DNA from: Antechinus flavipes
Lineage: Eukaryota
DNA length: 64,000 bases
Direction of reading: 5' to 3'
NCBI RefSeq assembly: GCF_016432865.1
Contig: NC_067404.1
Location: 84,692,001-84,756,000 of the forward strand
Part shown: one piece after another, positions 34,951-57,652 of the stretch
Position numbering within the stretch: the first letter of the stretch is position 1
How the letters are laid out: every line of letters starts with the position of its first letter
Position numbers and translations under genes: made by a program
Notes under the pieces: generated by a model
Database searches by the model: none
Told to the model about the DNA's origin: nothing
The model's input: only the letters and a program-made list of their open reading frames with translations

Positions 34951-35294
34951 CCAAATCTTTCCCATCCCAAATATTCTTAACTCCATAAATGGTAATGCAA
35001 GATCTTGAGCCATCCCAACATCATAGTGCTTGGACATCATAAGGATCTAGAACTGGGGGGAGGGGGAATCTAATTTCATCATTGACAAAAGAAATAGAGG
35101 CAAGAAGAGGTGAAGTGACTTGCCCAAATTCACCCAGAGCCAGGATTTGAACCCAAGGCTTCCAACTGCAAAGCCATCCCCCTTTCCACTTGTCCTCCCA
35201 GTAACGTATGGAGATCTACAGCCTTCCCCATCATCTTTGTCCCCCAACAGCATCTATCCCTGCCTTTTGGGTCACTTGAGTTTGGGGGGACAAG

Positions 35295-37105
35295 ATGAGA
35301 CGAGGCCCAACCGCCACCCCCGTAGGATCCTCCAGGAGCCTAACCACAGCAGAAGATCCTGCTGCGACCCCTTCGAGCAGCAGTCGAGTAGGGGGCACTG
35401 TGAAGGTCTATCTGCCCAACCAGCAGCGCACAGTGGTGAGCAATCCGGCAGGGAAGCAATATCAGGGATCCTGCCCAGGGAAGGGAGAGATTCCTAATCT
35501 GGGGAGCTGAACAAGGAGGGAGACTTGGGGAAGAAAATCAATTACGACCATCTCGGGGAATCGGGGGGGCCTGTTAGGTAACCGCCCGGGATGGAATGAC
35601 TGTCTCCGACTCATTGGACAAGGCACTGAAGGTGCGGGGACTGAACCAAGATTGCTGTGCCGTCTATCATCTTGTACAGGGGTGAGCTCCCTATCCGGCC
35701 CCCCTTCTCTCAGCCCCCCCAGCCTCTGTCTCCTCCTCAGCCATCACTGATCCTTCCCTTTCCCTATGTCTCATCCCCTCGGGTCCTGTAGCCGGAAGAC
35801 AGCAACAGCCTGGGACGCAGCCATTGCTCCTTTGCATGGGGAAGAACTGACGGTCGAGGTCCGGGCTGATGTTCCACTCGCAGCTGCCCACAACTTTGCC
35901 CGGAAGACATTCCTGGCTCCCACCTTCTGCGACTTCTGCCGCCGCTTCCTCTTTCATGGCTTCCGCTGCCAGACGTGTGGCTACAAGTTCCACCAACACT
36001 GCAGTGCCCGGGTCCCCACCGTCTGTGTTGACATGGCTACCGCCCGCCAACCGTGAGGCCTATGGTCCTTTCCCAGTCCCCAGGATCTCCCCAAGAATCC
36101 CCAGTGGCCTGGTTGCCTTTGTCTGTTAGCCTGCCCTCACCTGGGTTGGGGTGGGATCTCCCTCATCCCAGCTGGTCCTTCCTGAGGACTGCACCCTCCC
36201 TAAGGTCTCTAATTTTCTGCTTCAGTTGCTACCGCAGTGTCCAGGACTTGACTGGAAGCCCTGGTGCTCCTGAGCCCCAGTCTGGAAGCCAGGCCCTGTG
36301 TGAGTCCCACACCCCAAAGAGTCCCAGGTAAGGCCAGCAGATGGTCTGTGGAGGGAGGAACCTGATCCAGAGGCTTCCTCCTCCTCCTCCTCCTCCACTT
36401 CCCTTCCCCTCCAGGACGCAAACACCAGCCTCCCATGGGGAGACTTTTGCTTTCCCTGGGTCTGGAGGCCCACCCCTCCAGAGGATCCGCTCCACATCCA
36501 CACCCAATGTGCACATGATCAGCACCACGATGCCTGTGGACAGCAGGCTCGTACAGGTAGGGCATTCACTTGTGAGGGCAATCGATGCCTGTCAGTGGAC
36601 ACTCAGTGACGACTGTCCCTGGAACGCCTCCCAATAAGAACTCACCGAGGAGGTGGTCTGGGGGAGCTAGGCTTGGAGGGTCGGGGACCTGGGATGGGGG
36701 AGAGGGTCAAGTGGCCTGAGAGAACTCAGAAGCCTTTAGGGCAAAAGAAGGCCCAGGGTTCAAAGAAAAGGCTGACCTGTGCTCCCCCCGGTTTGCTCCC
36801 ACAGCAGGCAGCCCAGGCCTTCACTGCTGAAGGTGAGCATCCAAATCCCTTGATCCCAGCCCTTGCTGTCCCCGCTCCCCTCATCCTCTGGCCCAGGCCT
36901 TCCTTACTTCCATCTCTCTCTGGTTTCTTATCTGTGTCCTTGCCTCTCCCAGGAACAGGTGGGGAAAGGACCCCCCAAAGCAGTCCTAGCCCCAGCCTTG
37001 TGTCCCCCCCTGGAAGGAAATCCCCACACCCCAAGTTTTCATCAGAGCCCCTTGAGCGCAAGTCCTCAGCTTCAGCTGATGATAAGAAGAAAGTGGTAAG
37101 CTGGG

Positions 37106-37150
<45 letters not shown>

Positions 37151-38951
37151 TCTGAGAGCTCTCAAGGAGGGAAAATGGGGGAAATACTGAGAGAACGGGA
37201 AGCTCACTGCCCCCCTGTCCTATCCATGCCTCCCAGAAGTCCCTGGGTTACCGAGACTCAGGTTACTACTGGGAGGTGGCCCCAGGGGAGGTGCAGCTGC
37301 TGAAGAGGATCGGGACAGGCTCCTTTGGGACCGTGTTCCGTGGGCGATGGCACGGAGACGTGGCTGTGAAGGTGCTAAAGGTGGCACAGCCCACGGCTGA
37401 GCAAGCACAGGCCTTCAAGAACGAGATGCAGGTCCTCAGGTGAGCATGTGCACGGCAGCCAGCAGGGAGCACGAGCTGGCTTTGGGCAAGCAGGGGCTAA
37501 CCATCCCCCTCCCTCCCGTCGGCAGGAAGACGCGCCACGTAAACATCCTTTTGTTCATGGGCTTCATGACAAGGCCTGACTTTGCCATCATCACCCAGTG
37601 GTGTGAGGGTTCCAGCCTCTACCACCACCTCCACGTGGCTGACACTCACTTCGACATGGTACAGCTCATTGATGTGGCGCGGCAGACGGCTCAGGGCATG
37701 GAGTGAGTTCCTCCGAACCGGCCCTTGGCACGCGACGTTCACACGTGGCGCAGCTCAGAGCCGTTCCATAAATCTTCCCCCCATCCCCCGGGCATAGACA
37801 CGTATGTGTGTGTATGTGTGTTCGCACGCCCCAGACAGCTCTTCCTCATAATCTGTGTCCTTCTACAGTTACCTCCATGCCAAGAACATCATTCACCGAG
37901 ATCTCAAGTCCAACAGTATCCACCCGTGCTCCCTTAGAGGGCTGCTACAAAAGGGATGGGGAGGTCTGCCGAGGCAGGCTGGGAAAGGCAGTAGGTCCTG
38001 GGGGGTTGGAGGCAGGAAGATGGAGGGAGGGGTAGGGTGCCCAGAGAATACTGTCTGTGGCCTTTGACAAGGATGTAGATATCTTCCTGCACGAGGGGCT
38101 GACTGTCAAGATCGGAGACTTTGGGCTGGCCACTGTCAAGACCAGGTGGAGTGGCGCCCAGCAAGTGGAACAGCCCACTGGCTCTGTGCTCTGGATGGTG
38201 AGGCTGGGGGCTGGGAGGAGAGGGAGCGGCCACAGAGAGGGCAGGCCAGGCCAACCAGCTCACCCAGGCCTTCTCCCGGACTCCACAGGCCTCTGAGGTG
38301 ATCCGCATGCAGGACAAGAACCCCTACAGCTTCCAGTCTGACGTCTACGCCTATGGGGTCGTTCTCTATGAGCTCATGAGTGGCAGTCTTCCCTATAGCC
38401 ACATCAACAACAGAGATCAGGTGGACACTCCCTCCCCTTCCTTCCTCCCGCTCTCCCGGGACCCTCGTCCTGGCCCTGCCTGACCCTCACTCATGCAGCT
38501 CTTCCTTGGCTGGAGAACTTCCTTCTGGCACCTGCCAGGGTAGGACCGCCCCTAGTGATCCGATGCCCACTCCCTGCTCTGGTTGCAGATCATCTTCATG
38601 GTCGGCCGAGGTTATCTGTCACCAGACCTCACCAAAGTGTCCAACAACTGCCCTAAAGCCATGAAGAGGCTGCTGGCCGACTGTCTGCGCTTCCAGCGGG
38701 AAGAGCGGCCCCTCTTCCCCGAGGTCAGAAGCCACCTCCGGGTGGGCTTTGGGCTGGGCCAGGCCACCTGAAAGCTGGGGCCTCAAGCCTTGCCCGTTTC
38801 CTTCCCCACCCAGATCCTGGTCACCATAGAGCTGCTGCAGCGGGTGCTGCCTAAGATCGAGCGCAGCGCATCGGAACCGTCACTGCACCGGGCTCAGACT
38901 GAGGAGCTGCCTTCGTCCCTGCTGGGAGCCCTGCGCCTCTTTGGGCCGTAG
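35295..38951 (+). CDS. ARAF: A-Raf serine/threonine kinase, 623 aa; join(35295-35435,35578-35681,35792-36052,36226-36327,36415-36556,36805-36832,36953-37095,37237-37439,37526-37702,37869-37915,38079-38197,38289-38420,38589-38723,38814-38951)
   Basis: All introns are GT-AG and phases are consistent (1872 nt). RBD (TVKVYLPN), C1 zinc finger, CR2 RSTSTP, N-region SGYY, GTGSFG, HRDLK, DFG, C-terminal RSASEP. Synteny with SYN1/TIMP1. Confidence 0.97.
37107..37148 (+). repeat. (CA)n microsatellite just downstream of an ARAF splice donor
   Basis: Seen directly in the sequence. Confidence 0.95.
37916..38078 (+). other. ARAF: Putative U12-type (minor spliceosome) GT-AG intron of ARAF
   Basis: Donor GTATCC, branch-like CCTTTGAC 11 nt from the AG, no polypyrimidine tract. 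Position N|IFLH matches the RAF-family minor intron. Confidence 0.7.

Positions 38952-39537: not shown

Positions 39538-57652
<18,115 letters not shown>

Follow-up and report, generated by a model that had tools for sequence, protein, structure and literature searches.

The loss of an intron is a rare event in mammals, as the preliminary description of this locus had stated, yet there is good documentation of it; 87 cases were verified in a single screen, whose authors regard such losses as phylogenetic markers (PMC7605268). The catalogued mammalian cases (Coulombe-Huntington and Majewski 2007, as reported in PMC7605268; Churakov et al. 2020, PMC7605268; Zhu and Niu 2013, PMC3652778) come from screens focused on placentals, in which the opossum was used as a target or an outgroup and contributed eight candidate loci only. 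The loss described here, which affects ARAF, resembles the catalogued ones in that a single very short intron was removed exactly, with the exons intact, the reading frame kept and the change common to related species, but it is older, dating to the marsupial stem, and its place is within the 5′ third of the gene. The introns of ARAF have a known functional side, as their retention gives rise to dominant-negative isoforms in placentals: mouse DA-Raf1 and DA-Raf2 are produced by the retention of introns 6 and 5, respectively (PMC2064279), and human A-Raf short by the retention of introns 2 and 4, according to PMC3775402, which cites Rauch et al. 2011. In mouse ARAF, residue 153 marks the end of exon 5 and residue 186 that of exon 6 (PMC2064279). 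By this numbering, the 103-nt exon that precedes the lost intron in monotremes, placentals, and sauropsids is exon 4, the 155-nt exon that follows it is exon 5, and the intron between them, now lost, is ‘intron 4’.

We conclude, with a probability of about 0.93, that this short phase-0 intron was lost exactly and only once, on the marsupial stem, and that the gene in the window (the whole 64-kb stretch of Antechinus flavipes DNA that was analyzed) is an orthologous and expressed ARAF. The case is an ordinary precise intron loss and, as far as we found, an unpublished one, although public gene models already show the 14-exon structure; ARAF is unmentioned in the texts of the intron-loss papers that were examined. 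It provides a clean marker for all the marsupials sampled, a rare genomic change free of homoplasy, and a well-polarised addition, old and situated near the 5′ end of its gene, to the short list of mammalian intron losses. It also defines which of the isoforms made by intron retention marsupials can and cannot produce.

The RefSeq ARAF isoform X1 (P0285, 623 aa) matched the window residue for residue and mapped onto exactly 14 coding exons with AG/GT borders, as had been claimed for this gene beforehand. The exon lengths are 141, 104, 261, 102, 142, 28, 143, 203, 177, 47, 119, 132, 135, and 135 nt, and the coordinates are collected in the table. Pfam placed the Ras-binding domain (RBD) at residues 35–104, the C1 domain at 115–161, and the kinase domain at 327–580 of the antechinus protein. 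The nine marsupial ARAF proteins formed one cluster at 90%, and their next-best matches were the ARAF proteins of placentals and monotremes. With respect to orthology, the 13 other introns are kept one-to-one, the match to RefSeq ARAF is exact, and a synapsin gene adjoins ARAF downstream on the opposite strand in the opossum (L003), Dromiciops (L005), and Trichosurus (L006) loci. With an RBD, a C1 domain, and a Ser/Thr kinase domain, and with closest relatives that are named ARAF, the encoded protein is a RAF-family kinase and the orthologue of ARAF.

Features of the ARAF locus of Antechinus flavipes and supporting open reading frames (positions are those of the window)
Feature	Position	Strand	Basis or remark
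ARAF coding region, ATG to stop, 14 coding exons	35295..38951	+	exact mapping of RefSeq proteins P0285 and P0290
Coding exons 1–5	35295-35435, 35578-35681, 35792-36052, 36226-36327, 36415-36556	+	
Coding exons 6–10	36805-36832, 36953-37095, 37237-37439, 37526-37702, 37869-37915	+	
Coding exons 11–14	38079-38197, 38289-38420, 38589-38723, 38814-38948, then stop codon	+	
Fused coding exon 3, 261 nt	35792..36052	+	equals exons 4 + 5 in mouse/human numbering
Extra codon: GCA GCT GCC (Ala-Ala-Ala) for outgroup ACC ATG (Thr-Met)	35880..35888	+	261 = 103 + 155 + 3
Former position of the intron, CAC AAC TTT / GCC (H N F / A)	35889..35900	+	exon-by-exon alignment with platypus, turtle, and placental contig
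Intron kept upstream of the fused exon, 110 nt, phase 2	35682..35791	+	GT..AG joint in RNA contig skips 110 nt
Intron kept downstream of the fused exon, 173 nt, phase 2	36053..36225	+	RNA-contig joint 36052->36226
Read-through open reading frames			teleost araf P0007, P0009, P0154-P0156; RAF1 P0022, P0036; BRAF P0032, P0158, P0159

The third coding exon is a single exon, with the acceptor AG at 35790-91 and the donor GT at 36053-54. Its in-frame part, 35793-36050, ends with ATARQ and contains neither a stop codon nor a GT..AG interruption nor an N; the only runs of N in the window, 46549-46703 and 52547-52678, lie far from it. The claim of the preliminary description that one 261-nt exon reads through HNF|ARK without an intron is borne out by this open stretch and its AG/GT borders. 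The exon codes for the final portion of the RBD, followed by the linker and the complete C1 domain. When its translation was compared with solved structures of RAF1 and BRAF, it matched them from end to end, over the last part of the RBD and all of C1 (E ~1e-30); in this alignment antechinus ARAF has one extra residue, and RAF1 reads HNFARKTFL. The old junction sits between positions 35897 and 35898, i.e. at F117|A118, which is three codons into the C1 domain as delimited by Pfam and just past the His that is conserved in the HNF motif. The former exons on its two sides are both intact and in frame, and at HNF|ARK the codons are collinear with those of the exons in the outgroups. The junction had earlier been assigned to the linker between the RBD and the cysteine-rich domain (CRD), an assignment that the Pfam limits do not uphold, as they put F117|A118 inside C1 and leave only the extra codon in the linker.

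The relatives needed for the comparison were collected in steps. Five exon cores, entered as separate rows together with a full-length sponge RAF, were used for a profile search that retrieved opossum ARAF (P0168), and a search with this protein then retrieved the ARAF proteins of monotremes, placentals, reptiles, amphibians, and fish; a search with the 86-aa exon alone returned fragments only, full-length proteins being outside the length window of so short a query.

The results showed 15 coding exons in both platypus (P0413, locus L007) and leatherback turtle (P0364, locus L008). The marsupial 261 nt is represented there by 103 + 155 nt, and a phase-0 GT..AG intron exactly at HNF|VRK, which measures 102 nt in platypus and 600 nt in turtle, separates the two exons. 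The exon lengths of platypus are 186, 104, 103, 155, 102, 139, 28, 161, 203, 177, 47, 119, 132, 135, and 132 nt. A Logan contig from a non-human placental (L001), the protein of which differs only slightly from the mouse cDNA product P0151, carries a 90-nt GTAAGT...CAG intron at the same position. The ancestral structure was examined in this way without human DNA, and the placental evidence consists of non-human contigs and not of a complete gene. In addition, unspliced contigs of fish araf, RAF1, and BRAF contain open reading frames that run from HNF into an intron beginning ‘VS...’ and leave it as ‘...Q VRKTF’ (listed in the table). Since the same intron is present in fish araf, RAF1, and BRAF, it predates the vertebrate RAF paralogues, and its absence in marsupials is a loss.

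Apart from this one site, the boundaries and phases of the remaining antechinus exons correspond one-to-one with those of platypus and turtle. The ARAF genes of monotremes, placentals, and sauropsids are like those of marsupials in the gene itself and in its neighbours, with 13 of the 14 coding introns at identical position and phase and with identical lengths of the 104-, 102-, 28-, 203-, 177-, 47-, 119-, 132-, and 135-nt exons; the difference is that marsupials have one 261-nt exon with the linker PLAAAHNF, whereas the other groups have 103 + 155 nt and PLTMHNF. What the preliminary description had stated on this point agrees with these data: the ancestral 103 + 155 nt arrangement with a phase-0 intron at HNF|VRK, the same in BRAF, was seen in platypus, turtle, the placental contig, and the read-through frames, and the exon maps of platypus and turtle show that the other junctions correspond one-to-one and that 261 is 258 plus one codon. 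That description had also named an outgroup ARAF devoid of this intron as an observation that would speak against a loss; the intron was found in all three of platypus, turtle, and the placental contig.

One amphibian sequence is noted separately. The 1,345-bp contig with GDO81_029273 of the frog Engystomops pustulosus encodes a protein, P0001, that has an intron-like start (...LTPCLLLSSHR) and then continues unbroken through RKTLTDW...HNFVRKTHF...KLPK. It may represent either a spliced model of two exons or an independent loss of the same intron in that frog.

The 261-nt exon was found in the opossum (L003:3454-3714), in Dromiciops, the monito del monte (L005:3573-3833), and in Trichosurus, the brushtail possum (L006:1548-1808), and in all three it is bordered on both sides by short introns that have been kept. 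With Antechinus, the fused exon is thus present in four assemblies that represent four orders (Dasyuromorphia, Didelphimorphia, Microbiotheria, and Diprotodontia), and both sides of the basal split of marsupials are sampled. The screen of PMC7605268 accepts the absence of an intron when it is seen in at least two related species; here it is seen in Antechinus, Monodelphis, Dromiciops, and Trichosurus. At the protein level, PLAAAHNF|ARKTFL is common to all nine marsupial ARAF proteins. The sample comprises nine marsupials, five of them as proteins alone, with Paucituberculata, Peramelemorphia, and Notoryctemorphia outside it. The loss is dated to the interval between the separation of marsupials from placentals and the divergence of the living marsupial orders, and it is not specific to antechinus or dasyurids. 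The earlier claim of a lineage-specific intron loss therefore holds as regards the loss itself, but the lineage in question is that of all sampled marsupials and not that of antechinus or the dasyurids alone.

In the outgroups, the upstream exon ends with ...CACAACTTT, the intron runs GT(G/A)AGT...CAG, and the downstream exon starts with GT(G/C/A)CG, so that the codons at the junction are CTC ACC ATG CAC AAC TTT | intron | GT(G/C/A) CGN AAG. In marsupials the same stretch reads CT(C/T) GCN GCN GCC CAC AAC TT(T/C) GCC CGG AAG, with the intron removed exactly. The extra codon lies 9 nt upstream of the old junction, in the 10-residue linker between RBD and C1, and is common to all nine marsupial proteins (9/9). 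It is a change separate from the intron loss and would most simply be explained by a pair of substitutions to Ala and a subsequent slippage by one GCN unit. The first downstream codon has changed from Val to Ala, which is one transition away from the GTC of turtle, and Ala is also found at this position in RAF1 and in coelacanth ARAF. This Val-to-Ala change had been pointed out before; the change is real, but it has no special meaning, since RAF1 and coelacanth ARAF share the Ala. The extra Ala codon and the Val-to-Ala replacement are best read as separate events of slippage and substitution on the same long branch.

Nucleotide changes that are fixed in marsupials were no denser within 30 nt of the junction than elsewhere; they affect 23 of 197 informative sites and extend across the entire exon. 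A local substitution scar, such as would be left by conversion from a diverged retrocopy, was considered and is unsupported, as the changes are not clustered at the junction. GC-biased conversion was considered as well; there were 13 W>S and 7 S>W changes (and 3 S>S), which is too weak for a claim.

With regard to the course of events, a short phase-0 intron, of ~100 nt in the mammalian ancestor, was deleted exactly in the germ line of the marsupial stem, thereby fusing the 103-nt and 155-nt exons. As such, the deletion did not alter the protein, and the 261-nt exon was then passed on to all sampled marsupial orders. The exact deletion of a single very short intron fits a reverse-transcript model and microhomology repair alike. 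As the most likely route, at about even odds, we infer the one that is standard for mammals, namely recombination between a small stretch of ARAF and a reverse-transcribed copy of its spliced mRNA. The signature expected of a reverse transcript, i.e. a 3′ bias or the loss of adjacent introns, was not found, as the lost intron ranks third among the 14 coding introns counted from the 5′ end, and the neighbours of 110 and 173 nt have been kept. The next most likely route, which we put forward tentatively, is that a double-strand break was repaired by microhomology-mediated end joining of the GTR at the 5′ end of the intron with the GTR of the next exon, without an RNA intermediate. In the outgroups the intron starts with GTGAGT or GTAAGT and the next exon with GTGCGG, GTACGC, or GTCCGT, which makes a direct repeat of 2–3 nt, although a GT-start repeat of this length is common and has little power to discriminate. 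The loss of one short intron alone, with the adjacent short introns intact, would suit such a repair, and descriptions of the model exist for other animals, with birds as a group for which it was invoked (PMC7605268), whereas intron losses in therians are usually ascribed to the L1 reverse transcriptase (PMC7605268, PMC3652778).

It is also conceivable, but highly improbable, that the same intron was lost in parallel in several marsupial lineages. Recurrent loss is known in mammals, where 21 introns have been lost more than once (PMC7605268), but here the length of the exon, the extra codon of the Ala-Ala-Ala run, the Ala codon, and the flanking changes are common to all marsupials, and the four orders that have the fused exon sample both sides of the basal split. 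Still less credence can be given to an artefact of assembly or annotation, in the form of a collapsed intron or of cDNA or retrocopy sequence that was taken into the assembly. Over 35200-36412, contigs from the DNA-like runs X1, X3, and X10 were nearly absent, some records being removed by a filter, and the junction was covered by none; the guard against assembly error is thus the concordance of different species’ assemblies. Since four independently assembled genomes are concordant, a collapsed intron is excluded, and since 13 introns are kept around the fused exon, the gene is not a retrocopy; moreover, ordinary AG/GT introns flank the exon on both sides, and the locus is syntenic with SYN1. 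The reverse polarity, in which marsupials would be ancestrally intron-less and the intron gained in the other lineages, draws on the bare pattern of presence and absence among therians, but is already refuted by the outgroups and paralogues, as platypus, turtle, placentals, teleost araf, RAF1, and BRAF all have the intron, with no difference in codon or phase. A single exact loss on the marsupial stem is therefore the reading that we retain.

Expression was examined in RNA-seq data from a related species. A contig of run X15 consists of segments corresponding to 35253-35434, 35577-35680, and 35791-36052, and its GT..AG joints skip 142 and 110 nt. It has no joint within the fused exon, and the joint 36052->36226 is also present. 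This contig supports the exon borders and the expression of the gene, and says nothing on the genomic structure of that species at the site. Among marsupials, the fused exon shows 10–25 nucleotide differences vs 0–2 amino-acid differences, and this small number of amino-acid differences in relation to the nucleotide differences indicates that the exon is under purifying selection.

Another contig of a related species, 2,163 nt long, matched 35818-35899 and 36435-36473 with ~85% identity, the differences being mostly C>T and G>A. Between these two pieces it has 530 unrelated letters, as compared with 535 in the window, and its depth was twice that of the true ARAF contig. The same loose end past 36473 was seen in run X1. 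The contig looks like a decayed, unprocessed duplicate that was derived from ARAF and is located elsewhere in dasyurid genomes.

The intron loss bears on the isoforms that are made by intron retention. Intron 4 is one of the two introns retained in human A-Raf short, whereas marsupial ARAF has no intron 4, and a product of the A-Raf short type is therefore impossible in marsupials by that route. The introns concerned in the DA-Raf isoforms are kept. When the antechinus sequence is read on in frame past the exon ends, stop codons begin at the second base of the intron both after the fused exon (TGA, 36054-36056) and after the 102-nt exon (TAA, 36329-36331), which is where mouse DA-Raf2 and DA-Raf1, respectively, have theirs (PMC2064279). 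By retaining these introns, marsupials could make truncated isoforms that resemble DA-Raf2 and DA-Raf1.

As a separate observation, the 90-nt intron 4 of several non-human placentals (L001, L002; P0152, P0153, P0157) is open and a multiple of three in length. Retention of intron 4 in those placentals would add 30 residues between HNF and VRK and would not truncate the protein. In a sloth model (P0320) the junction reads HNFQ|VRK, and the additional Q is suggestive of an alternative acceptor at this site.

The amino-acid changes that are fixed in marsupials were compared between the parts of the protein. The RBD/C1 exons (2 and 3) have 18 such changes in 107 sites, whereas the kinase exons (8–14) have 10 in 241 (Fisher p = 1.6e-4), the count being confined to sites at which two monotremes and five placentals all have one and the same residue. 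Many of the fixed changes in the RBD/C1 exons (35578-36052) are to Ala or Arg, and all are then conserved across marsupials. The pattern is that of a burst of change in the Ras-binding module on the stem lineage, which, as far as can be discerned, was independent of the intron loss. The preliminary description had tied the loss of the intron to Ras engagement; we found no support for this, because the intron loss leaves the protein as before, and the one-residue longer RBD–C1 linker is the sole part of the idea that could have an effect. A broader scenario, in which A-Raf short is an old therian regulator of Ras–ERK signalling, marsupials are its natural knock-out, and the RBD/C1 changes together with the longer linker are a compensatory retuning of Ras binding, must be regarded as improbable.

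Some minor features of the locus are also recorded. A pair of acceptors at 36953 and 36959, 6 nt apart (CAG GAACAG|G), gives rise to the isoforms X1 (623 aa) and X2 (621 aa; P0290). An unspliced RNA contig covers 36023-36255. From ATG to stop, ARAF measures 3.5–3.7 kb in marsupials, where most introns are 80–400 nt long, vs 5.0 kb in platypus and 9.0 kb in turtle. The intron 37096-37236 contains a (CA)n microsatellite of roughly 30–40 nt just 3′ of the donor, which appears as a THTHTH... run in the frame translation.
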